A DNA stretch of 64,000 nt from Tubulanus polymorphus (taxonomy: Eukaryota; Animalia; Nemertea). The position numbers were made by a program, and so were the translations under genes. Location of the stretch: assembly GCF_964204645.1 (NCBI RefSeq), contig NW_027437449.1, positions 42,762-106,761 of the forward strand, written 5' to 3'. The stretch's first letter is position 1, and each line of letters starts with the position of its first letter. This document shows, piece after piece, positions 2,655-62,662 of the stretch. The notes beneath the pieces are model-generated. The model searched no databases. It had not been told where the DNA came from and saw only the letters and a program-made list of their open reading frames with translations.

Positions 2655-3330
2655 TGACAAAATAGAACAAATTCAGCTGATAATTCTTGATAGCGTCGAT
2701 AGAAGAGAAAGTTTTTAATTTATTTCTGGCGGCGGCAATTTAGATCAGGTCTGATTAGAAACTGTTGTAATCAGAGAATGATAGCGGGTAGTCAGTGAAG
2801 AGTCACCACATCTGACTGGTCACTGGTCACCGAACCTGACTGGTCACCAGTCACCACACCTGACTGTGTTATTTCTGTTCTTCCCAGCATGTCGTTTTGG
2901 TGAAGAAGGCGTAATTTATTACCGGGGGCGATCGGGTCTGATTAGAAATTGTTGAAATCAGAAAGATCATAACTTTTTGATATTTCACAAGCAAGATAAA
3001 CTTGTTCGACTTTTATAAAACAGAAGTAGACCGTATGACGTAAACATCAAGCGATTGAAATATTCACTTAACTTTTATTTAGCAAAAAATCCTCGAGATG
3101 ATTTTGTTTGCTAGATTTAAGTTGTTCAATTAAACAACTTAGTATTCAAAAATGATGGTAGTTTTGTTTTTATAATTTTCAATATAAATGGTAGGACTTA
3201 CTTTTTAGAATATTTGATAACGCAATCGATGCTTCAAAAAATACCGATAGAAAAGGAGGAATTAGATATATTTATTACATAATTACATATAATTTTCTGA
3301 CCGATTAGAGGGATTGAGATCGGCCCAAGT
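2655..3330. repeat. Dispersed repeat, paralogous to ~23215-24420; contains ~3 units of the 24-bp GTCACCACACCTGACTGGTCACTG repeat
   Basis: Shared sequence such as 'aaatagaacaaattcagctg...gatcaggtctgattagaaactgttgtaatcag...gaagtagaccgtatgacgtaaacat' at both loci. Confidence 0.85.
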
Positions 3331-14696: not shown

Positions 14697-15290
14697 TAGC
14701 TGTCGGACAGCACACTGGCTAGCTGTCGGACAGCACACTGGCTAGCTGTCGGACAGAACACTGGCTAGCTGTGAGACAGCACACTGGCTAGCTGTCGGAC
14801 AGCACACTGGCTAGCTGTCGGACAGCATACTGGCTAGCTGTCGGACAGCACACTGGCTAGCTGTCGGACAGCACACTGGCTAGCTGTCGGACAGCACACT
14901 GGCTAGCTGTCGGACAGCACACTGGCTAGCTGTCGAACAGCACACTGGCTAGCTGTCGGACAGCACACTGGCTAGCTGTCGGACAATTCACCAGCTATCA
15001 GCCAGTTCCCTAGCTGTCAGCCAGTTCCCAAGCTGTCAGCCAGTTCCCTAGCTATCAGACAGTTCACCAGCTATCACACAGTTCACTAGCTATCACACAG
15101 TTCACTAGCTGTCAGACAGTTCACTAGCTGTCAGACAGCACTATGGCTAGCTGTCGGACAGTTCACTAGCTGTCAGACAGTTCACTAGCTATCAGACAGT
15201 TCCCTAGCTATCACACAGTTCACTAGCTGTCACACAGTTCACTACCTGTCACACAGTTCACTACCTGTCACACAGTTCACAACTGTGTCA
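14697..15290. repeat. Minisatellite: 23-bp unit (ctagctgtcggacagcacactgg) x~12 grading into related 19-bp units
   Basis: Direct tandem periodicity. Confidence 0.92.
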
Positions 15291-15923: not shown

Positions 15924-18501
15924 CAAACTGTCGTTAGTTGTGTTCTAGTTGTGTCTGTCACGCGATTTCTAGTGGTAAATAGCGAATATCAAACTGTCGT
16001 TAGTTGTGTTCTAGTTGTGTCTACCACGCGATTTCTAGTGGTAAATAGCGGATATCAAACTGTCGTTAGTTGTGTTCTAGTTGTGTCTACCACGCGATTT
16101 CTAGTGGTAAATAGCGGATATCAAACTGTCGTTAGTTGTGTTCTAGTTGTGTCTGCCACGCGATTTCTAGTGGTAAATAGCGGATATCAAACTGTCGTTA
16201 GTTGTGTTCTAGTTGTGTCTACCACGCGATTTCTAGTGGTAAATAGCGGATATCAAACTGTCGTTAGTTGTGTTCTAGTTGTGTCTGACACGCGATTTCT
16301 AGTGGTAAATAGCGGATATCAAACTGTCGTTAGTTGTGTTCTAGTTGTGTCTACCACGCGATTTCTAGTGGTAAATAGCGGATATCAAACTGTCGTTAGT
16401 TGTGTTCTAGTTGTGTCTACCACGCGATTTCTAGTGGTAAATAGCGGATATCAAACTGTCGTTAGTTGTGTTCTAGTTGTGTCTGACACGCGATTTCTAG
16501 TGGTAAATAGCGGATATCAAACTGTCGTTAGTTGTGTTCTAGTTGTGTCTGACACGCGATTTCTAGTGGTAAATAGCGGATATCAAACAGTCGTTAGTTG
16601 TGTTCTAGTTGTGTCTACCACGCGATTTCTAGTGGTAAATAGCGGATATCAAACTGTCGTTAGTTGTGTTCTAGTTGTGTCTGCCACGCGATTTCTAGTG
16701 GTAAATAGCGGATATCAAACTGTCGTTAGTTGTGTTCTAGTTGTGTCTGCCACGCGATTTCTAGTGGTAAATAGCGGATATCAAACTGTCGTTAGTTGTG
16801 TTCTAGTTGTGTCTACCACGCGATTTCTAGTGGTAAATAGCGGATATCAAACTGTCGTTAGTTGTGTTCTAGTTGTGTCTGCAACGCGATTTCTAGTGGT
16901 AAATAGCGGATATCAAACTGTCGTTAGTTGTGTTCTAGTTGTGTCTGACACGCGATTTCTAGTGGTAAATAGCGGATATCAAACTGTCGTTAGTTGTGTT
17001 CTAGTTGTGTCTACCACGCGATTTCTAGTGGTAAATAGCGGATATCAAACTGTCGTTAGTTGTGTTCTAGTTGTGTCTACCACGCGATTTCTAGTGGTAA
17101 ATAGCGGATATCAAACTGTCGTTAGTTGTGTTCTAGTTGTGTCTACCACGCGATTTCTAGTGGTAAATAGCGGATATCAAACTGTCGTTAATTGTGTTCT
17201 AGTTGTGTCTGACACGCGATTTCTAGTGGTAAATAGCGGATATCAAACTGTCGTTAGTTGTGTTCTAGTTGTGTCTACCACGCGATTTCTAGTGGTAAAT
17301 AGCGGATATCAAACTGTCGTTAGTTGTGTTCTAGTTGTGTCTGCCACGCGATTTCTAGTGGTAAATAGCGGATATCAAACTGTCGTTAGTTGTGTTCTAG
17401 TTGTGTCTGCCACGCGATTTCTAGTGGTAAATAGCGGATATCAAACTGTCGTTAGTTGTGTTCTAGTTGTGTCTGCCACGCGATTTCTAGTGGTAAATAG
17501 CGGATATCAAACTGTCGTTAGTTGTGTTCTAGTTGTGTCTGCCACGCGATTTCTAGTGGTAAATAGCGGATATCAAACTGTCGTTAGTTGTGTTCTAGTT
17601 GTGTCTGCCACGCGATTTCTAGTGGTAAATAGCGGATATCAAACTGTCGTTAGTTGTGTTCTAGTTGTGTCTACCACGCGATTTCTAGTGGTAAATAGCG
17701 GATATCAAACTGTCGTTAGTTGTGTTCTAGTTGTGTCTGCCACGCGATTTCTAGTGGTAAATAGCGGATATCAAACTGTCGTTAGTTGTGTTCTAGTTGT
17801 GTCTACCACGCGATTTCTAGTGGTAAATAGCGGATATCAAACTGTCGTTAATTGTGTTCTAGTTGTGTCTGACACGCGATTTCTAGTGGTAAATAGCGGA
17901 TATCAAACTGTCGTTAGTTGTGTTCTAGTTGTGTCTGCCACGCGATTTCTAGTGGTAAATAGCGGATATCAAACTGTCGTTAGTTGTGTTCTAGTTGTGT
18001 CTACCACGCGATTTCTAGTGGTAAATAGCGGATATCAAACAGTCGTTAGTTGTGTTCTAGTTGTGTCTACCACGCGATTTCTAGTGGTAAATAGCGGATA
18101 TCAAACTGTCGTTAGTTGTGTTCTAGTTGTGTCTGACACGCGATTTCTAGTGGTAAATAGCGGATATCAAACTGTCGTTAGTTGTGTTCTAGTTGTGTCT
18201 ACCACGCGATTTCTAGTGGTAAATAGCGGATATCAAACTGTCGTTAGTTGTGTTCTAGTTTTTTCTACCACGCGATTTCTAGTAGTAAATAGCGGATATC
18301 AAACTGTCGTTAGTTGTGTTCTAGTTGTGTCTGACACGCGATTTCTAGTGGTAAATAGCGGATATCAAACTGTCGTTAGTTGTGTTCTAGTTGTGTCTAC
18401 CACGCGATTTCTAGTGGTAAATAGCGGATATCAAACTGTCGTTAGTTGTGTTCTAGTTGTGTCTACCACGCGATTTCTAGTGGTAAATAGCGGATATCAA
18501 A
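15924..18501. repeat. 66-bp minisatellite, ~39 copies
   Basis: caaactgtcgttagttgtgttctagttgtgtctNNNacgcgatttctagtggtaaatagcggatat, highly homogeneous. Confidence 0.97.
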
Positions 18502-21500
18502 CAAGACGCAGGTCTTTGTTTTTACCTGATTCTCCCTGATGTCTCATTCTGTGTGTATTTTTATAAAAACTACTCCCTTCCCCTAATCAGAATCACGTTC
18601 TGTTCAAACACAATTCCCGAAAATGACTACAATATTTAAAACAACGTACCTCTTGGTTTGTGACAAAACTGTATGAAAAATGTCCGTAGAAACTACTGCG
18701 CATTGGGTAAAACACTGAACTGCGATCAAATTGAGATTTCACCGACCAATATTTCACCGCACTCCCGTCACGTGATATATCGTATTTTTAGATATGAGGT
18801 AATAATCGTCACGTGTCCTGTGAACCCCGTACATTACCTGACATTACGTCGTTCGATTAGAATAAGACACTGATTATTTTTAGACCCCGTAGAAAACCGC
18901 TGTCGTTTCGGGCCACACGATTGGTCGTAACATTAAGAAATATTTGTGTAATCAACTAGATTTCAGCGTCCAATGAAATCAATTTTTAGGTCCTGAAAAC
19001 AACAATCTCAAAGAAATTGTTCCGAGTAAGAGTTCAATTTCAAGTCACGGCCGAGGGTATATAGTTTGAGAGTCTTGTGACAAAGGCATCATGTGTTATT
19101 TGAGTATATTTTAAGTGACCACATTTCACTCAGACTCCAGATCGACTTTGATAAACAAAGCTTTGAAGATGTCCGATCAAATAAACCTAAAATAATATCG
19201 TAAGTTATCAATGTATCTAGATTCAGATGGCGCTGTATAAAATACTAGTAATTAAAAGTGAATAAAATCACGGGTTTTCTGTTTATTCGAACTCCTTGTG
19301 ATTTGAGGCAGTATTTTCATTGGTTGAGATTTGAACCTGTGTTTGATGTTTGCGCGGTTGGTCTTGTAAATAAATAAACTGATATTATTGAAAAGTTCTC
19401 ATGTTCTTGTTCAGGATTGAGATTCTATGGAGATATTACTGTTTCACTAAACAGTCACATATGAATTTTAAGAACCGTGGAATTCGGTCCAGATTAGATA
19501 TAAACTTTGTATAAAGGTTTTTTTAAATTTTAAAGTTCAATCTGTGATCAATGCAAAGCTTATATCACCTCTTTAAAATCGAGACGTTGCTTGTGACATA
19601 AAAATGATAAAGTTCTATGCATTCTGATAAGAGTATTTGACTCATTGAGCTGAACGACAGATTTCAGTAAACAATTGAATTGACCTGATTGTACTTTTTA
19701 ATGGTTTCATATATAATTTTGTCGCTCATTCTAAGGAATATATATGTTAAACAATAAATTCAGCTAATGACCATCTGTACTATACATAATCAGGACTCAA
19801 ACAGGACCTAGCGCCTGATGTAGGTTCAGACATACACATTTTTGGTTAAGTTAACATTTTTAGAATTTTGATTTCAATCCATAAACATGCTGAACAGATT
19901 TAAGAGTCTTTAAATCAGCTGGTATATACTGGTCTATTATAACTGCTTTTTATTGTGTTAAATATCATCCTCGCTTGCCAGGGTTTGATTGCGAGGACGG
20001 TTAAATATATGATATTGAAATGATGCGCATACGACCAAGAGAATTCGAATGTTGAGACCTCTGTTGCCCGGTACAGATGCAGCAACTATTGATGTCTCGG
20101 TTATAGTTTGCACGTAATTTAGGCCCTAGATTTTCTTGTTGTATTAAGTCTAACATGTCTCACTTAAACCAATAAGTTTTTATGTGGAACCTGGGCCATT
20201 TTAACCTAACCAACGTTTGATTCTGATGGTTCGGTTAGATACGTGTTCATTGATGACAGGTGCGTCAACATATATCACATGTACATGTCACATGATAAAA
20301 ACCACTCGCAGTGAAAAGACTGATATTTTTGCTAATTTTAAGAATTGTATAAAATGCGTCTCATTAATCGATGTTTTCGATTTAGGGCCAAACTATTGTC
20401 GGAAGATTTAAAGCCTAGCTAAAGATGAATTAAACTTCTTTCAGCTGTTTTAATAGCAGCTTTGCGAAATTCCGCCGGTAGCATTTTATTTTAGTGCAAA
20501 GCCATTGCAACAGACGGGCTGAAATAAACACCATCAGAAATTGTCACCTTTCTGCCTTCAACCAGCCCTGGCAGTGGTTGTCTCCACAGGATCATCCTAG
20601 TGTACCCAACTGCCCAGACACCTCAAATTCGCGTGACTTTGACACCGACCACATTTCAAGCGGCTTTTTTATCTGTGTTTAAACTGCGATATCTCAGCTC
20701 ATAAACAACTCATTTTGATAACTTTCTACACTGACCTTAAGACGTTTTACGTTTATATCTTTTTGACGATTGAATTTAATTACGGTCACCAGTCACCAGT
20801 TTGAACCGGTTGTTTTCACAGTACGTGATATTTTCCATGAATTCCTTTCATCAATTTATAACCATTTTTATATCTTTATTTCTTGAAGAAAAGCTGTTAC
20901 TATTGGTCAAACAATATCAGTCACATGATTGACCTATTTCTGTACGTTATAGCATTGTTTATCGGTGTCCCGGAAAAAAATGTCCCATTTTTGTAAGGTA
21001 GGAAAACATGTCCCGGTCTATCATTACTAACTTTTTAATTTAGTCAATTTCACATCAAAATAACACCAGAGAACAAACTTGGCAATACATTTTGATTACA
21101 TTTTTAACATCTAACAAAGAATGGCTCTACTTTGATTTGATTAATTTGTATGTAAAATCCTCTTAAGTTTGACGTATTTATTTAAGTAACAGTGCTTTTA
21201 CTTAATAACTTTTCATAATGTTCTCCATTAATAATATATTATTTAGCAACTGCGCATTCATTCAATTCGATTGTAAAACCTTCTTAAATTTGACGTATCA
21301 TGATAATGTTAATATACACAATGAATTCTCATGTTCACTTGATAAAACTCGTTCCAAATGTGTGTCGTTAAAAAAGAATTCATACAATCTTATAAAGCGT
21401 TGACGCGGCCTGTAAAGGGAGATAAGCCTCATTCACTTTCCTAACATGTACGCCTATATATAATCTATACTTTCATATTTGCACTGAGTTTGTTTTTTTA

Positions 21501-23359: not shown

Positions 23360-23775
23360 AGTCACCACATCTGACTGGTCACTGGTCACCACACCTGACT
23401 GGTCACTGGTCACCACACCTGACTGGTCGCCGGTCGCCACACCTGACTGGTCGCCGGTCACCACATCTGACTGGTCACTGGTCACCACAACCTGATTGGT
23501 CACTGGTCACCACAACCTGATTGGTCACCAGTCACCACAACCTGACTGGTCACTGGTCACCACACCTGACTGGTCACTGGTCACCACAACCTGATTGGTC
23601 ACTGGTCACCACACCTGACTGGTCACTGGTCACCGCACCTGACTGGTCACTGGTCACCACACCTGACTGGTCACTGGTCACCACATCTGACTGGTCGCCA
23701 GTCACCACAACCTGATTGATCATTACATTTGACTGATTGGTTCACTGGTCACCACACCTGACTGGTCACTGGTTA
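23360..23775. repeat. 24-bp minisatellite (gtcaccacacctgactggtcactg), ~17 copies
   Basis: Tandem periodicity, expanded relative to the paralog at ~2800. Confidence 0.9.
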
Positions 23776-23814
23776 ACACAATGACCAGACAAACTTACAG
23801 TCCGCGTTTATCGT

Positions 23815-53966: not shown

Positions 53967-55893
53967 GGTTAGGTTTAGAGATAGAGGTTAGGGGACCAAA
54001 CCGAAGGTTTGGAGACCCCACTAGTGCACGGGCAGCGGGTTATCCCTGTAAAAAAGTAGTGAGAGTTAATTGTTGTAGTGAGGCGGTCTACGGGACGTTC
54101 ATGCCTCGGGGCGTGTTCGTGTCGAGTCGTCGTATCCAGTCTTGTTCGGCTGCTTCGCGGATCGGTCTCGTGGAGCCTGGTAGGTGTTGGAGACCGTACA
54201 CCCGAAAGTGTTCGCGGGTGTGGTCGACTTGGTTGAAGTGGTCCGAGACTGGAGTCGAATTCTTCGTTCTGATGCGTGAGACGTGATGAGTGACGCGTTC
54301 TCGTAGAGACATTCCGGTTTGGCCGACGTACAGCATGTTGCACTTGGTGCATTCGATGCAGTATACAATTTCACGGGTCGCGCAATTAATTGTGCTGCGG
54401 ATCGCGTGCATTTTGTTGTGGCTGCGGCAAACGGTTGTTTCTCGGACGAGTGGACACGTACGACATCTCGGTGTTCTGCATTTCTCGGTGCCTCGACGTC
54501 GGGTTGACGGAGTTCTTTGAGTAGACCTGGAAATAGAAGAATTGGAAACAACGGAAGTATTTCTGTTACGATGTGGTGAAGAGGGGACTCGGGGAGGGGG
54601 TGGCTCCGTGGGTTTGAGCTGCGACGAAGTAAGGAGATCTTTGAGACTCTTGTGCTTGGTGTAGGCGGTGACCGTGGTTACCTCGTCAGACCGGCCGGTG
54701 GCCGTAGCCAGTTCCGTAAATCTGGTTCGGATGTTACGGGCTAGGGTTCGGTTGGCTTCGGAGTGAGGTAAGATAAGCGGTAAACGCTTTTTCGGCGGTT
54801 CGTCGGCCCGTTGTTGTTCTCGTAGATCTCGTTCGGCGTGGTGCCGTAGAGCTTGGCTTTTGATGTGTCGCAGTTCGCGGTCTTTGTAGCCACGACCTCT
54901 GAGTACTTTAAGGACGGTTCCGGACGCTGCGTGTAAGTCCGAATCGTTATTGCAGATGCGCCGGAACCGGAGAATTTGACTTTTAACTATACCGGAAAAT
55001 GTGTGTTTAGGGTGAAACGAGGATCGATGTAGTAATTGATGCGAATCGGTTGGTTTGAAGTAGACTTTGGTGTCTACTGTGCCACTTGTCTCGAATCGCG
55101 GGCCTTTGAAAGTGGTTACGTCCAGGAAGTTGACGCTGGTGTCGCTGATTTCGAACTTGAGTTTGATGGATCGGCTCACTGTTTGTAGGACGTCGATGAA
55201 TTGCATCAACGTTTCGCGGCCGTGTTCCCAAACTATGTAGATGTCGTCGATGAACCGAGCGTATAGCGATGGTTGGAGTTCGCTTCTGGACAGACCTTCT
55301 TTTTCCCATTCGGCTACAAAGATATTGGCATAAGAAGGAGCAAAACGCTTACCCATTGCGGTACCTTTTACCTGTAAATATGTGTTTTCGTTAAAGTTAA
55401 AGTCATTTTTCTTCAGGCTGATTTCGAGTAGTTTCAGCAGCTCGGCATCCGGGCGTCCCGGGTTTGGGTTATCTCGGAGAGCTTGTCGGATGCTGGCGAT
55501 ACCCTCTTCGTGGGGGATGTTGGTGTAGAGCGAATCGATGTCCATGGTGACGAGTAACGCATCGGCGCTAAATTGTTTACCGGCCAAAATATCTAGAAAG
55601 TGGTTGGTATCTTTGACGTACGACGGGTGACCGCGGGCGATCGGCTGCAAATAGTAGTCGATCCATTCCGAAATTTCGTAGGTTTCGGAGCCGCAGTCGG
55701 AGACGATCGGTCTCCCCGGCGGTACGCGATCGGGTACCGTCCACTTCTCGCGTTCTTTATGGATTTTGGGAAGCAGATAGAACTGCCTCTGTTTCGGATT
55801 ATCGGGCGGTAATAGATATTCGGCGGTTTTTAGCGGGATGATTTTTCGTCGAGCCATATTTTCGATGATTTCGCGAATTTCTTCCCCGGTCTG
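53967..55893 (-). mobile_element. 5'-truncated Penelope-like retroelement (copy 1)
   Basis: Near-identical to 55911-57837 (offset 1944); truncated at the RT N-terminus (QTGEEIRE). Confidence 0.95.
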
Positions 55894-55912
55894 GCTAGGG
55901 TTAGGGTTAGGG
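55894..55912 (+). repeat. Telomeric-repeat linker capping the truncated copy
   Basis: gctagggttagggttaggg between the two copies. Confidence 0.9.
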
Positions 55913-56031
55913 TTAGGTTTAGAGATAGAGGTTAGGGGACCAAACCGAAGGTTTGGAGACCCCACTAGTGCACGGGCAGCGGGTTATCCCTGTAAAAAAG
56001 TAGTGAGAGTTAATTGTTGTAGTGAGGCGGT

Positions 56032-58491
56032 CTACGGGACGTTCATGCCTCGGGGCGTGTTCGTGTCGAGTCGTCGTATCCAGTCTTGTTCGGCTGCTTC
56101 GCGGATCGGTCTCGTGGAGCCTGGTAGGTGTTGGAGACCGTACACCCGAAAGTGTTCGCGGGTGTGGTCGACTTGGTTGAAGTGGTCCGAGACTGGAGTC
56201 GAATTCTTCGTTCTGATGCGTGAGACGTGATGAGTGACGCGTTCTCGTAGAGACATTCCGGTTTGGCCGACGTACAGCATGTTGCACTTGGTGCATTCGA
56301 TGCAGTATACAATTTCACGGGTCGCGCAATTAATTGTGCTGCGGATCGCGTGCATTTTGTTGTGGCTGCGGCAAACGGTTGTTTCTCGGACGAGTGGACA
56401 CGTACGACATCTCGGTGTTCTGCATTTCTCGGTGCCTCGACGTCGGGTTGACGGAGTTCTTTGAGTAGACCTGGAAATGGAAGAATTGGAAACAACGGAA
56501 GTATTTCTGTTACGATGCGGTGAAGAGGGGACTCGGGGAGGGGGTGGCTCCGTGGGTTTGAGCTGCGACGAAGTTAGGAGATCTTTGAGACTCTTGTGCT
56601 TGGTGTAGGCGGTGACCGTGGTTACCTCGTCAGACCGGCCGGTGGCCGTAGCCAGTTCCGTAAATCTGGTTCGGATGTTACGGGCTAGGGTTCGGTTGGC
56701 TTCGGAGTGAGGTAAGATAAGCGGTAAACGCTTTTTCGGCGGTTCGTCGGCCCGTTGTTGTTCTCGTAGATCTCGTTCGGCGTGGTGCCGTAGAGCTTGG
56801 CTTTTGATGTGTCGCAGTTCGCGGTCTTTGTAGCCACGACCTCTGAGTACTTTAAGGACGGTTCCGGACGCTGCGTGTAAGTCCGAATCGTTATTGCAGA
56901 TGCGCCGGAACCGGAGAATTTGACTTTTAACTATACCGGAAAATGTGTGTTTAGGGTGAAACGAGGATCGATGTAGTAATTGATGCGAATCGGTTGGTTT
57001 GAAGTAGACTTTGGTGTCTACTGTGCCACTTGTCTCGAATCGCGGGCCTTTGAAAGTGGTTACGTCCAGGAAGTTGACGCTGGTGTCGCTGATTTCGAAC
57101 TTGAGTTTGATGGATCGGCTCACTGTTTGTAGGACGTCGATGAATTGCATCAACGTTTCGCGGCCGTGTTCCCAAACTATGTAGATGTCGTCGATGAACC
57201 GAGCGTATAGCGATGGTTGGAGTTCGCTTCTGGACAGACCTTCTTTTTCCCATTCGGCTACAAAGATATTGGCATAAGAAGGAGCAAAACGCTTACCCAT
57301 TGCGGTACCTTTTACCTGTAAATATGTGTTTTCGTTAAAGTTAAAGTCATTTTTCTTCAGGCTGATTTCGAGTAGTTTCAGCAGCTCGGCATCCGGGCGT
57401 CCCGGGTTCGGGTTATCTCGGAGAGCTTGTCGGATGCTGGCGATACCCTCTTCGTGGGGGATGTTGGTGTAGAGCGAATCGATGTCCATGGTGACGAGTA
57501 ACGCATCGGCGCTAAATTGTTTACCGGCCAAAATATCTAGAAAGTGGTTGGTATCTTTGACGTACGACGGGTGACCGCGGGCGATCGGCTGCAAATAGTA
57601 GTCGATCCATTCCGAAATTTCGTAGGTTTCGGAGCCGCAGTCGGAGACGATCGGTCTCCCCGGCGGTACGCGATCGGGTACCGTCCACTTCTCGCGTTCT
57701 TTATGGATTTTGGGAAGCAGATAGAACTGCCTCTGTTTCGGATTATCGGGCGGTAATAGATATTCGGCGGTTTTTAGCGGGATGATTTTTCGTCGAGCCA
57801 TATTTTCGATGATTTCGCGAATTTCTTCCCCGGTCTGTTCGAAGATCGGTTGCTGCAGCGGCTGATAATACTCGAGATCGGCTAGTTGGCGCATGGCTTC
57901 GAGGACGTAGTCGTCGCGGTCCATGATAACCGTAGCGGAACCCTTATCGGCGGCTTTGATGACAATATTAGTGTTGTCACGCAGCTGCTGGAGGGCTTCG
58001 CGTTCCTGTTTAGTGAGGTTATCATTTACGCGACGCGTATCCCTGGTTTGTTGAGCCAATTCGTGCGCGTCGTTGCAGAACCCGGCGATTACTGGTTCTA
58101 TTTCATCCGGAGCCCAACTGCTGGGCAGACGGAAACGCGGAGCCTCGCGGTCCGGTTTGTCACGGAAGTGATGGTCGAGTTTCACTAGCCGGTTGAATCG
58201 GCACACTCCCTTGGTGCGCTCGGTCGCGGCGGCATCAGAACCGATTTTTGGAGTCGGGCAATAAGTGAGGCCCTTTCGGAGTAGCTGATGTTGCGCCGGA
58301 CTTAGGCGGAGTGAACGTGTGAGGTTGACCACCGGGCTCCCGAGAGCGGTGACCGGATCGCGTCGCGCTTGGTTTGGTGCCGGTTCTTCGTGTTCGTCGG
58401 ACCTGGAAATGGAAGAAATCAGAGAAGCATTGGTTAATTCCGGTTGATTTAACTCACCAATAGTGGACCCGTTGGTCTCACTAATACTTAG
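56032..58491 (-). CDS. PLE ORF2: reverse transcriptase, CxxxxCxxC linker, GIY-YIG endonuclease; no ATG start, frame open up to the ORF1 end in the -1 frame
   Basis: LPKIHK, GRPIVS, MDIDSLYTNI, GTAMGKRFAPSYANIF, ARFIDDI, VNFLDV; CRTPRCRTC; IVYCIECTKCNMLYVGQT...R...HF...AAEQ...GMN. Confidence 0.95.
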   Translation of the reverse strand, partial: LSISETNGSTIGELNQPELTNASLISSISRSDEHEEPAPNQARRDPVTALGSPVVNLTRSLRLSPAQHQLLRKGLTYCPTPKIGSDAAATERTKGVCRFNRLVKLDHHFRDKPDREAPRFRLPSSWAPDEIEPVIAGFCNDAHELAQQTRDTRRVNDNLTKQEREALQQLRDNTNIVIKAADKGSATVIMDRDDYVLEAMRQLADLEYYQPLQQPIFEQTGEEIREIIENMARRKIIPLKTAEYLLPPDNPKQRQFYLLPKIHKEREKWTVPDRVPPGRPIVSDCGSETYEISEWIDYYLQPIARGHPSYVKDTNHFLDILAGKQFSADALLVTMDIDSLYTNIPHEEGIASIRQALRDNPNPGRPDAELLKLLEISLKKNDFNFNENTYLQVKGTAMGKRFAPSYANIFVAEWEKEGLSRSELQPSLYARFIDDIYIVWEHGRETLMQFIDVLQTVSRSIKLKFEISDTSVNFLDVTTFKGPRFETSGTVDTKVYFKPTDSHQLLHRSSFHPKHTFSGIVKSQILRFRRICNNDSDLHAASGTVLKVLRGRGYKDRELRHIKSQALRHHAERDLREQQRADEPPKKRLPLILPHSEANRTLARNIRTRFTELATATGRSDEVTTVTAYTKHKSLKDLLTSSQLKPTEPPPPRVPSSPHRNRNTSVVSNSSISRSTQRTPSTRRRGTEKCRTPRCRTCPLVRETTVCRSHNKMHAIRSTINCATREIVYCIECTKCNMLYVGQTGMSLRERVTHHVSRIRTKNSTPVSDHFNQVDHTREHFRVYGLQHLPGSTRPIREAAEQDWIRRLDTNTPRGMNVP

Positions 58492-58497
58492 TTTAAA
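58461..58497 (-). promoter_or_regulatory. -1 programmed ribosomal frameshift signal
   Basis: ORF1 ends GGU UUA AAC UAA (U_UUA_AAC in X_XXY_YYZ phase); 7-nt spacer; hairpin UAGUG(A)GACC-AACG-GGUCCACUA; the -1 frame is ORF2. Confidence 0.8.
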
Positions 58498-59999
58498 CCA
58501 CTGAGCCAGTGGTCCAGCAGGGTGTTAGCTGTACCACGGTTCCAGTGGATCCCGTCTCCAACAACTCTGAAGCGTCGATCATCGATGGGTGGTATCGCGG
58601 TGACGTCGTCGTGAATCTCGAGGAATTCGTTGAACTTCCGGGCGAACTGCTGGTGTTCGCGGGTCGTGTTGAGTTGAACGAAGTGGACGAACGAGTGCTG
58701 ATACTTCTTGACTGCGGCGTTGATCAGGCGCTGTGTGGTCTTCTTGGCGGTCGCTTCGAAGTTGTTGTCGCGGTTGTTGATTCCGACGCTGATGATCACC
58801 GTATCCGGGCGATCTCGGCGCTCCGGTACAGCATCGATCAGGTCGGCGAGATGAGCTATCTTGCAGCCGGGGAAGCTCTCGATCTGGACGTCATCCGGAC
58901 GGCGGCTTGATGTGATGTTACTCAGATTTGAGTCACCAATCACCAGAATGGGTCGCCGGGTTGGTGGCAGACTCCAATCCTGTTTCTTCCGACCCGTATT
59001 CGGATGACGGCGAACTTCCTGGGGCGCCATCGGTCTCGGTGTTGGCGTCGGACTTCGCGCTGGCAGTAGGCGCCCTGGTGACCTGTAATGAGACGGAGAG
59101 CTGGAAAGAGAAGAAGAGAGAGACGGCGTCGGACTGCTGGTTGGTGCGGTCGGCGTTCTCTGCGGCGGCGGCGGCGTCGGGTTTCGAGGCGGCGGCGTCG
59201 GACTTCTCGGTGGCGTCGGACTTCTTGGTGGCGGCGGCGGCGGCGTCGGCATCGGACTTCTCGGTGGTGGCGCCATTCTGGTTGGTGGCGTCCTGGTGAC
59301 ATCCGCGTAGCTTCTCGGTGACCTGGAATCAGAAAAAGAAGGAGGCGCTGTGGGCGCGGCGGGCGCGACTGCGGTTGGTGCAGGCGTCCTCGGCGTCGCG
59401 GGCTTTCGAATCTTCCGGCTCGGTCTCGGCGGCGGACGAATCTTCGGCTCCGTGGGTGCCTCCTGGTGGTGTGACCTGAAATGAGAAGGGGAAGAAGGTG
59501 GGTTAGATAGGACATTTCTGAGTTTGTCAGACAGAGCCTGACCGCGGAATTTCGACCGCAAATCCAGCGCGATGTTGAAAAGCCGGATCGTTCCGGGGCT
59601 CAGACGGGAGCCGAAATTCCTCCGGGCCCATGTCAGGGCGACATCCTGTGCTGATAGACAGTCCGGCAGAGGATCACCCATTAGCTGAACAAATGTGGCA
59701 GCGTAATGGATGGTCAGCTCTTTCGAAACTGTCTCCATCCAGACGTCCGCGGCAGCGTGCAGCTGCACCGTTACTGCTTCGGTGCAAGCCGCCGGCCGCA
59801 GGAACATCTTCAGATGGTCCTTCTTCCTCCGAATCGCTTTCGGACCAGAGCTCAACTGGGCAAGGTGGTGCGCCACTTGAAGAGCTCTATAGTAATTTTT
59901 CGGCGACATCCCGGGTTGCTGGTGTCGCTCAGGGCGTCCTCCGCCCTTGCTGGTCTTCTCAGCTGGTGGTCGTTTCTTCTTTCGAGTAGATCGCTCCAT
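58488..59999 (-). CDS. PLE ORF1: basic N-terminus, Pro/Ser/Thr/Arg-rich linker, SGNH/GDSL esterase domain (alternative start at 60050)
   Basis: Blocks ILVIGDSN, SFPGC, IISVGINN, DGIHW match SGNH blocks I, II, III and V. Confidence 0.88.
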   Translation of the reverse strand: MERSTRKKKRPPAEKTSKGGGRPERHQQPGMSPKNYYRALQVAHHLAQLSSGPKAIRRKKDHLKMFLRPAACTEAVTVQLHAAADVWMETVSKELTIHYAATFVQLMGDPLPDCLSAQDVALTWARRNFGSRLSPGTIRLFNIALDLRSKFRGQALSDKLRNVLSNPPSSPSHFRSHHQEAPTEPKIRPPPRPSRKIRKPATPRTPAPTAVAPAAPTAPPSFSDSRSPRSYADVTRTPPTRMAPPPRSPMPTPPPPPPRSPTPPRSPTPPPRNPTPPPPQRTPTAPTSSPTPSLSSSLSSSPSHYRSPGRLLPARSPTPTPRPMAPQEVRRHPNTGRKKQDWSLPPTRRPILVIGDSNLSNITSSRRPDDVQIESFPGCKIAHLADLIDAVPERRDRPDTVIISVGINNRDNNFEATAKKTTQRLINAAVKKYQHSFVHFVQLNTTREHQQFARKFNEFLEIHDDVTAIPPIDDRRFRVVGDGIHWNRGTANTLLDHWLSGLN

Positions 60000-60040
60000 T
60001 GACAGATATTTCGGCGAGGTTGCCTTCGTCAGTGTCAGTG
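59997..60040 (-). ncRNA. Minimal type I hammerhead ribozyme at the PLE 5' end
   Basis: CAcUGACA-CUGACGA-A-GGC(aaccuc)GCC-GAAAUAU-C^UGUCAaUG: stem I UGACA/UGUCA, palindromic AUAU in place of stem III, predicted cut between 60005 and 60004. Confidence 0.8.
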
Positions 60041-60050
60041 CAGGAATCAT

Positions 60051-60081
60051 GCTGAACTAGGATTAGACACGGGTTTTTATA
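60051..60081 (-). promoter_or_regulatory. Candidate Pol II core promoter (TATA + Inr-like)
   Basis: TATAAAAA at 60081-60074, 28 nt upstream of the A in TTCAGC at 60053. Confidence 0.5.
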
Positions 60082-60886
60082 CACGCAGCGCGCAACAAGT
60101 GAACAGTATTCGAGTTAGAAGTTAAGTGACCATATGAGACCTTGTGATCTAGACTAATTGTACTTCTGTGATCAAGCTAATAGACAAACTAGGGGTCTGA
60201 CTAATTATGCCTTTGATCCAGAGTGACTAGAAAACAGCACTAATTATGGCCCTTGATCTAGCTGTTGAATAGTTTGCGTTGATGTATAGTTCTAAAGATC
60301 TAAAGAGCGGCGTGTCTAATATAGAATTGAAAAGTTTATTTCGATATAACCTAATAAATACTCAAAGTGTTTTCTATAAAGAGAAATCTAGAATATGTAT
60401 TATTAATATACGTGAACCGGAATGTTCGAAATATGTCCGAGTTCAGTTTCAAAATTGCTTAATTCCTAATTAGTTTAGACGCGTTAATTAGCGGTGCGCG
60501 GCCGAGGCGTATTCCGATATACGCGTGTTTACTAAATAGTCGTAAATGGTGAAATCCGGTTCTTAGTTAATCAAGTTTTCTCCGTATTCTAAAGCTTTTA
60601 AGAGCGGATTTTGAAATATCTACGCGGTATTCTACCGAAAATTGGATGAATTAGACAGCGCGGCGTCGGCGATTTAGTAGGAAGTTATAACCCGTAAGAT
60701 CTAAATTACTGAGTGAGCGCGGGTGGTTGATTAGCCCTAATTATGGGTGACGAGTTTTGATAGAAATGTCTTACTAATACGTCTGTTTTAATTCTAAGTT
60801 CTTAAATATAATTCTATTAGATAAACTACGCTTATTTAGAGTTATTAGGATCGAGTAAAGCTATGTGAACTTGAACATGTAGGGTT

Positions 60887-62601
60887 AGGGTTAGGTTTAG
60901 AGGTATAGGTTAGGGGAACCAATCAGAGTATCAATTAATGTTTTTGTGTTCTTCAGATTAACCCACCACAATTAATCGAGAGTAATTAACTGATATCTTT
61001 TCAGAACCCCACTGTGACACTGGCAGCGGGAAAGCCGGCTAACTCCACCTGCCGGAAGGTATTAGAGTTAGGGATACCGAAAAGCAATCCACCACCTAGA
61101 CCGGGACTCGAACACCGGACCTTTCGTTTGCCGGACGACTGCTCTACCGATTGAGCTACCTGGGCGGACCGACGATTGCTCTCGGTTTCACCTCTATATC
61201 TCCGCACTTTCCTGGCACTGGTCGGGGTTAGGTTTAGAGGTATAGGTTAGGGGAACCAATCAGAGTATCAATTAATGTTTTTGTGTTCTTCAGATTAACC
61301 CACCACAATTAATCGAGAGTAATTAACTGATATCTTTTCAGAACCCCACTGTGACACTGGCAGCGGGAAAGCCGGCTAACTCCACCTGCCGGAAGGTATT
61401 AGAGTTAGGGATACCGAAAAGCAATCCACCACCTAGACCGGGACTCGAACACCGGACCTTTCGTTTGCCGGACGACTGCTCTACCGATTGAGCTACCTGG
61501 GCGGACCGACGATTGCTCTCGGTTTCACCTCTATATCTCCGCACTTTCCTGGCACTGGTCGGGGTTAGGTTTAGAGGTATAGGTTAGGGGAACCAATCAG
61601 AGTATCAATTAATGTTTTTGTGTTCTTCAGATTAACCCACCACAATTAATCGAGAGTAATTAACTGATATCTTTTCAGAACCCCACTGTGACACTGGCAG
61701 CGGGAAAGCCGGCTAACTCCACCTGCCGGAAGGTATTAGAGTTAGGGATACCGAAAAGCAATCCACCACCTAGACCGGGACTCGAACACCGGACCTTTCG
61801 TTTGCCGGACGACTGCTCTACCGATTGAGCTACCTGGGCGGACCGACGATTGCTCTCGGTTTCACCTCTATATCTCCGCACTTTCCTGGCACTGGTCGGG
61901 GTTAGGTTTAGAGGTATAGGTTAGGGGAACCAATCAGAGTATCAATTAATGTTTTTGTGTTCTTCAGATTAACCCACCACAATTAATCGAGAGTAATTAA
62001 CTGATATCTTTTCAGAACCCCACTGTGACACTGGCAGCGGGAAAGCCGGCTAACTCCACCTGCCGGAAGGTATTAGAGTTAGGGATACCGAAAAGCAATC
62101 CACCACCTAGACCGGGACTCGAACACCGGACCTTTCGTTTGCCGGACGACTGCTCTACCGATTGAGCTACCTGGGCGGACCGACGATTGCTCTCGGTTTC
62201 ACCTCTATATCTCCGCACTTTCCTGGCACTGGTCGGGGTTAGGTTTAGAGGTATAGGTTAGGGGAACCAATCAGAGTATCAATTAATGTTTTTGTGTTCT
62301 TCAGATTAACCCACCACAATTAATCGAGAGTAATTAACTGATATCTTTTCAGAACCCCACTGTGACACTGGCAGCGGGAAAGCCGGCTAACTCCACCTGC
62401 CGGAAGGTATTAGAGTTAGGGATACCGAAAAGCAATCCACCACCTAGACCGGGACTCGAACACCGGACCTTTCGTTTGCCGGACGACTGCTCTACCGATT
62501 GAGCTACCTGGGCGGACCGACGATTGCTCTCGGTTTCACCTCTATATCTCCGCACTTTCCTGGCACTGGTCGGGGTTAGGTTTAGAGGTATAGGTTAGGG
62601 G
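60887..62601 (-). mobile_element. Tandem array of five apparently identical 337-bp tRNA-containing SINE-like units plus a 30-bp partial sixth
   Basis: Units start at 60887, 61224, 61561, 61898, 62235 and 62572; each begins (plus strand) ggttaggtttagaggtataggttaggggaaccaa, similar to the PLE terminus. Confidence 0.9.
61093..61165 (-). tRNA. tRNA-like sequence (GGC at the anticodon position; probably not a translating tRNA); repeats at 61430-61502, 61767-61839, 62104-62176 and 62441-62513
   Basis: GCCCAGG-TA-GCTC AATCGGTA GAGC-A-GTCGT CCGGCAA ACGAA-AGGT-CCGGTG TTCGAGT CCCGG-TCTAGGT: A and B boxes intact; C33, stem mismatches and a bulge. Confidence 0.75.
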
Positions 62602-62662
62602 TTAGGGTTAGGGTTAGGGTTAGGTTTTAGGGATAGAGGTTGGGGGTTTGCACCCCCGGTGC

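Follow-up and report, generated by a model that had tools for sequence, protein, structure and literature searches.

How does a non-coding repeat of a few hundred base pairs come to stand in tandem between a retroelement and the telomere? The question is raised by the window analysed here, i.e., the last 64 kb of contig C32 (C32:42762-106761) of the palaeonemertean Tubulanus polymorphus, whose assembly comprises 268 Mb in 77 contigs. In this window, an array of 337-bp units lies between a full-length Penelope-like element (PLE), hereafter PLE-A, and the terminal (TTAGGG)n tract. An earlier note had taken the unit for a telomere-targeted short interspersed nuclear element (SINE) mobilised by the PLE. 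We conclude that the unit is probably, with a good deal of room for doubt, a non-autonomous retroelement mobilised by the telomere-associated, endonuclease-bearing PLE-A.

The array (60888-62601, minus strand) was delimited by Tandem Repeats Finder (TRF; period 337, 5.1 copies, 100% matches at 60888-62601), by a search of the species' own genome and by reading the sequence. It consists of five identical 337-bp units (60888-61224, 61225-61561, 61562-61898, 61899-62235 and 62236-62572, all on the minus strand) and a distal 29-bp partial unit (62573-62601, minus strand; unit positions 309-337). Read in the sense direction, the units lie on the C-rich minus strand and have their 5' ends towards the chromosome end. 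The terminal telomere tract follows directly and runs to the contig end (62602-64000, plus strand; TRF), while short telomere tracts separate the PLE-A copies from each other, PLE-A from the array, and the array from a 43-bp stub (62620-62662). At 337 bp the unit is too short to hold a reverse transcriptase (RT) of its own, and among the open reading frames (ORFs) of the window none in the array is RT-like. Judged from its sequence, the unit is a non-coding element with a tRNA-derived module.

The relation to PLE-A was established at the 3' end of the unit. The PLE tail pattern is exact at 53967 and 55911 and recurs at each unit start with 2 mismatches in 28 nt, for a chance expectation of 0 matches; together with a 1-nt indel (ggggaacc versus ggggacc), this agrees with the two substitutions and one indel given in the earlier note. 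The accompanying claim that there was no other similarity to the PLE proved wrong. A second shared block, block B (CCCGCTGCC.GTG.CAC.AGTGGGGT), was detected by blastn in the unit and in the 3' untranslated region (UTR) of PLE-A, and a weaker block A (TAACTCT.A.T.C.TT..ACAGG) lies upstream of it. A gap-tolerant global alignment places the final ~190 nt of the unit in collinear order along the whole 121-nt PLE-A 3' UTR, in three blocks that include the common tail TTGG(T)TCCCCTAACCT.TA.CTCTAAACCTAACC. This collinearity is broken by two insertions, one of ~20 nt and one AT-rich insertion of ~85 nt, which stands in place of a 19-nt hairpin of PLE-A. A global alignment of the unit and the PLE end by MAFFT had obscured block B, which blastn and the gap-tolerant alignment recovered. 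In unit 1, block B (CCCGCTGCCAGTGTCACAGTGGGGT) lies at 61006-61030 (minus strand) and corresponds to CCCGCTGCCCGTGCACTAGTGGGGT in the PLE-A 3' UTR. The homologous tail (TTGGTTCCCCTAACCTATACCTCTAAACCTAACCC) lies at 60888-60922 (minus strand; unit positions 303-337) and merges in phase with the short telomere tract at 60880-60895. The AT-rich insert between the two (60923-61005, minus strand) is predicted to form a long hairpin closed by GGGG/CCCC.

Two families of the unit, 81% identical, occur in the genome, family 1 with a period of 337 bp and family 2 with a period of 353 bp. Family 2 is closer to PLE-A (tail 32/34, E=2.5e-7; block B 26/29, E=3.5e-5) than family 1 (tail 35/40; block B 23/26; all by blastn). 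The three collinear blocks constitute a 3' region in common with an autonomous partner that would supply the RT, as expected of a SINE. Besides, the unit has the general features of non-autonomous PLE derivatives, namely no RT of its own, a 3' end of the PLE-A type, and insertions that are head-to-tail or carry partial duplicates.

The proposed autonomous partner is the full-length PLE-A at 55911-60879 (minus strand), with ORF1 at 58488-60050, an ORF for RT and GIY-YIG endonuclease at 56032-58332, and the 3' UTR at 55911-56031. A 5'-truncated PLE-A, which starts at about PLE position 3042, precedes it at 53967-55895 (minus strand); its tail adjoins non-telomeric DNA, and between this copy and the full one lie 17 bp of telomere repeat. 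The RT ORF matches RVT_1 and, weakly, the GIY-YIG model of Pfam (21 bits, cut-off 22.6). The GIY-YIG motifs are readable in the translation (IVY...LYVGQT, Arg, Cys/His, Glu/Asn), and the endonuclease is apparently intact. With RVT_1 and GIY-YIG motifs and PLE-type proteins as its nearest relatives, the partner is not a long interspersed nuclear element (LINE) lacking long terminal repeats (LTRs), as the partner of a SINE would be. Its RT is 96% identical to an NCBI protein from Tubulanus polymorphus, and ORF1 had no Pfam match at E<0.01. To our knowledge, the telomeric PLEs published so far are endonuclease-deficient. At least 137 candidate copies of PLE-A occur in the genome; the 40 that were scored are ~100% identical, and most stand in head-to-tail arrays at contig starts (plus strand) or ends (minus strand). 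Such PLE-A arrays were found, oriented, almost only at chromosome ends (C4:4-71 kb, C10:1-36 kb, C30, C54, C63, C65), and PLE-A copies begin at two discrete 5' ends, positions 1 and 24.

The 3' ends of the unit and of PLE-A also have an architecture in common with other elements. Five elements were compared, i.e., PLE-A, a second PLE (PLE-B), unit families 1 and 2, and the PLE of L059 (2897-3036 of a Logan contig, public run ERR10705268). All five have a hairpin closed by runs of G4-6 and C4-5 and, immediately 3' of it, a tail of 25-30 nt that reads CCCC(T/C)AACC..CTAAA.CCTAACC; the stem sequences vary among the elements, and the arrangement is kept. PLE-B is represented in the window by the 43-bp stub, a 5'-truncated 3' end (62620-62662, minus strand) made up of the hairpin GGGGGTGCAAACCCCC and the tail AACCTCTATCCCTAAAACCTAACC. 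It also forms 5.5-kb tandem copies at C4:52-58 kb (3' ends L048/L049, C4:52099-52145 and 57612-57658), which stand head-to-tail without telomere repeats between them, and BLAST of PLE-B against PLE-A found no similarity except the hairpin-plus-tail motif. The L059 PLE, whose protein is 61% identical to that of PLE-A, has block B, a GGGGAACC...GGTTCCCC hairpin and a telomere-like tail followed by (CCCTAA)n. Because it has the same block B, hairpin and tail, the telomere-specialised PLE lineage is, on this comparison, present in more than one genome and extends beyond that of T. polymorphus. PLE relatives at ~50% identity have ordinary 3' UTRs without the hairpin and tail architecture, and a metagenome scan with the degenerate tail pattern gave no match. 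These ~50%-identical relatives (L060-L062 966-2453, from marine metagenomes) have an ORF1 with a GDSL lipase/esterase domain.

Upstream of the PLE-type region, every unit carries a tRNA-like module, at 61093-61165 in unit 1 (unit positions 60-132) and at 61430-61502, 61767-61839, 62104-62176 and 62441-62513 in units 2-5, all on the minus strand. The module was recognised by Rfam model RF00005 with 43 bits (gathering score 29) in 5/5 units, on the same strand as the PLE-A ORFs, which bears out the earlier observation of a tRNA-like segment in PLE orientation in each unit. An A-box-like TAGCTCAATCGG and a B-box-like TGTTCGAGTCC lie within it, and the module of family 2 has a perfect GGTTCGAGTCC; at the sequence level, the unit has the head expected of a SINE, i.e., one from a small RNA gene transcribed by RNA polymerase III (Pol III) with an internal promoter. 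ARAGORN called no tRNA in the array. The Rfam alignment shows one mismatch in the acceptor stem, one in the anticodon stem, a bulged T stem and a C at position 33, which precedes GGC at the anticodon position. A normal tRNA gene was rejected on the ARAGORN result and these cloverleaf defects, though the covariance model matches; because the Rfam model matches and ARAGORN does not, the module is best described, from its sequence, as tRNA-derived rather than as a normal tRNA gene. Candidate parent genes of the module, known from coordinates, were among the matches of the own-genome search.

Two further parts of the unit bear on its transcription. A 59-nt leader (61166-61224 in unit 1, minus strand; unit positions 1-59) is present upstream of the tRNA start in every unit and separates it from the previous tail. 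On the sense strand, the unit has a single T4 run, the TTTT at 61080-61083 (minus strand; unit positions 142-145), where Pol III may terminate; both families retain it, 10 nt past the 3' end of the tRNA-like module. Since type 2 Pol III transcription, which depends on internal A and B boxes, does not take in sequence that precedes the tRNA start, an RNA made by Pol III from this head would lack the leader and should end at TTTT, before the tail. No copy starting at or just before the tRNA start was found in the own-genome search or in the arrays read, and a strict Pol III SINE is doubtful. The tRNA module appears to be under selection, and it could serve as a promoter for Pol III, as a site for TFIIIC or as a signal for RNA processing. 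The leader begins with a short, weak match to the PLE-B 5' end (AGCCTGAGCCGGAA versus (TC)AGCCTGTGCCAGGAA), from which unit position 1 may be the true terminus of the element. A different tRNA-like sequence, 76% identical to the tRNA part of the unit, lies on the opposite strand just inside several subtelomeres (L039 2113-2203 on C9, C51:710-800, C16:166142-166232, C8:13388-13476); at C9 it adjoins a short repeat, CCCTAGCCTTATCCCATTAAA, that comes after the telomere tract.

The own-genome search returned 112 matches and ten arrays, nine of which were read in sequence, while the C34 array, a dimer, is known from coordinates only. Family 1 forms arrays at the C32 end, the C10 left end, C10:14.06 Mb, C7:21.57 Mb, C65 (26 units) and the C9 start, with copies 98-100% identical; at C10:14.06 Mb and C7:21.57 Mb an assembly gap terminates the array, and the sequence past it is unique. 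Family 2 arrays were found at C10 left, C66, C34 and C8 left. The strand of all ten arrays fits a C-rich sense strand whose 5' ends face outward, and each of the nine arrays read adjoins telomere repeats or PLE-A arrays. In 8/9, the proximal unit has a complete tail fused in phase to a telomere tract (15, 24, 30, 102, 143, 1073, ~1400 and ~1700 bp), beyond which the sequence varies from array to array: PLE-A, as its 5' end or as a truncated copy; a truncated unit from the other family; or unique DNA. The telomere bias supposed in the earlier note is upheld, and is strong, among the copies at other ends, whose proximal boundaries are mostly phase-locked to the telomere repeats. The exception among the nine is C65 (L035 8758-8830), where family 1 position 61 is joined to PLE-A at ~1087 with 1 nt of microhomology, which fits template switching and deletion alike. 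A second sense-collinear chimera, at C10:7844-10404 and known from coordinates only, joins PLE-A (24 to ~2590) to family 2 position 77; both chimeric junctions fit template switching by the RT or deletion.

The distal boundaries differ from the proximal ones in being truncated. Distal units are 5'-truncated at positions 20, 77, 103, 242/243 and 309, with telomere repeats next to them wherever the distal flank was read; the distal end of the C10 family 2 array is known from coordinates only. A single 5' junction register, in which ...CCCTAACCCTA is followed directly by the element, was found in all seven 5'-truncated copies compared (PLE-A at 3042, 4022 and 1298; family 1 at 20 and 242; family 2 at 103; and the PLE-B stub), whereas the chance of seven junctions falling in one of six registers is about (1/6)^6. 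Units and PLE-A have this 5' junction signature in common. The fixed register, ending in CCCTA, fits either a default start of telomerase on a new 3' end or a fixed endonuclease cut within the repeat.

The comparison of the two families suggests which parts of the unit matter. Identity between family 1 and family 2 is 95% in the tRNA part, 89% in the tail, 86% in the block A region, 78% in block B, 64% in the AT-rich insert, 55% in the trailer and 54% in the leader, the least conserved region (tRNA part versus leader, Fisher p=5e-8). Among ~45 family 1 copies, variation seen in more than one copy is confined to the leader. The conserved 3' parts are those in common with the PLE cis-elements, and this uneven conservation points to function.

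Copies of the unit also occur away from telomeres. A young copy, 99% identical, stands at C4:9.66 Mb within a 27.4-Mb contig, without a telomere tract. It is made up, in order, of an inverted partial (unit positions 246-314), a direct 41-nt partial tail (297-337) and a full unit, with a CCTAACC heptamer 2 nt past the tail. Partial duplicates upstream are typical of PLE insertions, and the inverted form is a feature of Penelope. The direct form is known from PLE insertions as pseudo-LTRs and head-to-tail insertions (PMC8557442). Diverged fragments (73-83% identical, known from coordinates only) occur at positions that are internal given a numbering of contigs by size, and several of them keep the 3' end (unit positions 145-337, 179-337, 190-336 and 229-337). 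Internal copies in the own-genome search include those at C3:19049471, C10:10269314, C2:3912861, C6:11833803, C5:16624984 and C16:168389. No target-site duplication was seen at the copies whose flanks were read, and most copies sit in arrays. Two diverged internal matches, likewise known from coordinates only, cover the leader and tRNA part (C5:6901706-6901828 and C8:10779722-10779894; unit positions 8-131 and 4-180) and may represent the locus from which the head was derived, or else a related family whose tail differs. A 249-nt contig of run X4 (window query 61004-61205) joins unit positions 20-221 to the flank of the internal C4 copy without ~125 nt that are present in the assembly; it could be a deletion allele, a splice or a unitig artefact.

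Based on these structures and their distribution, we propose the following scheme. The RNA of the unit would comprise the 59-nt leader, the tRNA-derived module with its TTTT, and a derivative of the entire PLE-A 3' UTR, i.e., blocks A and B, the hairpin of G and C runs, and a single-stranded tail of 25-30 nt ending in CCUAACC(C). The tail would anneal to G-strand telomeric DNA, either at the 3' overhang or at a nick made by the GIY-YIG endonuclease, and the PLE RT would recognise block B, the hairpin and the tail in trans and copy the RNA onto the chromosome end. The 5' end of the copy would thus lie outward and be capped by telomere repeats. As in other PLE insertions, seamless head-to-tail arrays could form by template jumping from the RNA 5' end to the next tail or from templates longer than one unit, with unequal exchange adding to their growth. 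Precedents for parts of this scheme exist among PLEs: non-autonomous derivatives of the Chlamys clade have the 3' ends of autonomous families and form multicopy head-to-tail insertions (PMC8557442), and endonuclease-deficient PLEs at chromosome ends have telomere repeats added to their truncated 5' ends (PMC3846280).

Several points weigh against this scheme. We infer the RNA intermediate from DNA sequence, and likewise the recognition in trans by the PLE enzyme and the mode of array formation. The units within an array are joined without variation and are 98-100% identical, a picture that amplification at the DNA level would give as well. A full-length unit 5' end was never seen against anything but the preceding tail, so that either the template is longer than one unit, or the enzyme jumps to the next tail, or the arrays expand at the DNA level. 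For the 3' regions, folding z-scores were not significant, and the argument from the hairpin is comparative because folding energies alone do not carry it. Recombination between chromosome ends clearly occurs, since the C7 array is a mosaic in which three units of one variant are followed by an intermediate and then by a distal unit of the second variant; its distal truncation point (242/243) is also that of the right-hand C10 array. The same phase-locked junctions would result if a telomeric overhang invaded the tail of another array and started break-induced replication. A rival explanation is a subtelomeric satellite, in which a PLE 3' end and a tRNA gene were fused once and then spread at the DNA level only, by unequal exchange, gene conversion, or break-induced replication through annealing of the overhang to the telomere-like tail. 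The near-uniform arrays with their invariant unit junctions, the intermediate unit of the C7 mosaic and the truncation point found again in C10 all fit such a satellite. As the tail is the only telomere-homologous part of the unit, an invasion driven by homology would begin in phase as well; the truncated distal units and the fixed CCCTA register would be explained by erosion of the end and its later healing by telomerase, and break-induced replication would reproduce orientation, phase-locked start and common distal ends. On the other hand, the contrast between the tRNA part (95%), tail (89%) and block A region (86%) and the leader (54%) indicates selection and not neutral drift, and the conserved parts match cis-elements of three PLE lineages. 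The young copy, at 9.66 Mb in the interior of a 27-Mb chromosome, lacks a telomere tract and has partial duplicates of the PLE type, several older internal fragments keep the 3' end, and the array begins exactly at the tail in 8/9 arrays read. Region-specific conservation, the PLE-type 3' signal and the young internal copy weigh against recombination alone, and we hold the satellite to be rather unlikely, though a serious contender.

Among the accounts that do invoke an RNA, the classical SINE, with Pol III transcription from the tRNA head through the tail and that transcript as the PLE template, draws on the match to the tRNA model with A and B boxes, the 95% conservation of this part between families with a perfect box in family 2, and a 3' region taken from the partner 3' UTR as in stringent SINE/LINE pairs. 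Against it stand the 59 nt upstream of the tRNA start in every unit, the lack of any copy found starting at or just before that point, and the sole TTTT, which in both families lies 10 nt after the tRNA part and upstream of all recognition parts, and we regard it as unlikely. Of the earlier description as a PLE-mobilised SINE, the tRNA module, the PLE-type 3' part and the orientation stand; the leader, the TTTT and the seamless arrays in place of single dispersal speak against the SINE, and mobilisation by the PLE is likely. Longer-than-unit or permuted templates, which the seamless tandem array and the kept leader would fit, are the strength of a retrozyme-like model, in which multimeric or circular array RNA is the template and the tRNA-like fold, cut by RNase P and RNase Z, is the processing signal in place of the hammerhead. 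Animal retrozymes are indeed tandem non-autonomous PLE derivatives (PMC7229834; bioRxiv 10.64898/2026.07.22.740005), and tandem non-coding units related to a PLE terminal sequence are what was found here. However, no hammerhead was found at E<=1 by permissive Rfam scans of the unit with its junction or of PLE-A, in which minimal hammerheads could be missed; a CUGANGA...GAAA core was not seen by eye in the unit, and the Rfam scan gave tRNA only. The label of retrozyme was rejected as not supported by the Rfam models. Moreover, every copy has the tRNA part, which cuts by RNase P and RNase Z would take out of the linker RNA, and the telomere junctions show that copying starts at the tail and not at a processed tRNA end, which makes this model improbable. 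An assembly artefact, i.e., a collapsed or mis-joined repeat at the contig end, might be suspected from the perfect identity of the five units and from the two other arrays that abut assembly gaps. It is rendered extremely improbable by arrays with different flanks on nine contigs and by the recovery of the unit with the 337-bp repeat joint in contigs of 3/4 public runs compared, all four from one study, which bear on the existence of the tandem joint only.

The non-autonomous retroelement proposed here resembles several known systems and coincides with none of those compared. Stringent pairs of tRNA-derived SINEs and LINEs include eel UnaSINE1/UnaL2, salmonid SmaI/RSg-1 and the tortoise Pol III SINE/CR1. 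Like these SINEs, the unit is short and non-coding, has a tRNA-derived module with A and B boxes, and has a 3' region homologous to the partner 3' UTR, with a stem-loop and terminal repeats for priming. Unlike them, its partner is a PLE with RT and GIY-YIG domains instead of a non-LTR LINE, a 59-nt leader precedes its tRNA part and a TTTT comes directly behind, and it stands in seamless telomeric tandem arrays, whereas those SINEs are dispersed with target-site duplications. Animal non-LTR retrozymes are likewise tandem non-coding units of a few hundred base pairs, related to PLE termini and with a proposed dependence on PLEs, and their multimers in Xenopus are enriched near chromosome ends (PMC7229834; bioRxiv 10.64898/2026.07.22.740005); the unit differs from them in having no type I hammerhead in the Rfam scan, a tRNA-like module and telomere-locked boundaries. 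The non-autonomous Chlamys elements, e.g., MRC1 of Chlamydomonas, are PLE derivatives with autonomous-family 3' ends and head-to-tail insertions, as is the unit, and produce pseudo-LTRs (PMC8557442), but they are non-telomeric and without a module derived from a small RNA, and their partner clade has an N-terminal endonuclease.

Among elements attached to telomeres, the endonuclease-deficient PLEs Athena and Coprina (PMC8557442, PMC3846280), HeT-A with TART/TAHRE (PMC5537684) and TRAS/SART of Bombyx (PMC7265360) form oriented head-to-tail arrays at chromosome ends in the manner of the unit, with reverse-complement telomere repeats at the 3' end and repeats added to truncated 5' ends. HeT-A of Drosophila is also non-autonomous and relies on the RT of a partner (PMC5537684). 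The unit is set apart from these retroelements by being only 337 bp long, non-coding and tRNA-headed, and from Athena and Coprina by the apparently intact GIY-YIG endonuclease of its partner PLE-A. With ordinary subtelomeric satellites it has in common the tandem arrangement, homogenisation between ends and a position adjoining the telomere, but not the phase-locked start at the tail, the region-specific conservation matching retroelement cis-elements, or the young internal copy.

SINEs are defined by their dependence on LINEs, and the non-autonomous PLE partners known to us are ribozyme-bearing retrozymes and deletion derivatives. No paper on a tRNA-headed PLE partner or a telomere-specific SINE was found in the literature searched, which lacked most subscription journals. 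It is quite possible, and we advance it tentatively, that the unit is the first SINE-like partner of a PLE, i.e., a tRNA-headed RNA with a PLE 3' signal that is copied onto chromosome ends by the RT of a telomere-specialised, endonuclease-bearing PLE. Its tRNA-like module may take over the part that the hammerhead plays in retrozymes, or it may work in subtelomeric chromatin as a Pol III/TFIIIC element. PLE RTs are the closest retroelement relatives of telomerase. If the proposed partnership holds, a small non-coding parasite, a PLE and telomerase jointly build nemertean chromosome termini, with the unit as a third component of animal chromosome ends beside telomerase and an endonuclease-bearing PLE. 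PLE RTs would then recognise in trans a compact 3' RNA signal, a hairpin plus a telomere-complementary tail, small enough for experimental dissection, and the unit would be a naturally occurring, minimal template with which to study the priming of PLEs on telomeric DNA and the tandem nature of their insertions.

The window holds further tandem arrays that are unrelated to the unit, at 14697-15280, 15924-18502 and 23361-23780; these comprise 23-bp and 19-bp repeats, a 66-bp repeat (39 copies, 97% matches) and a 24-bp repeat (17 copies).

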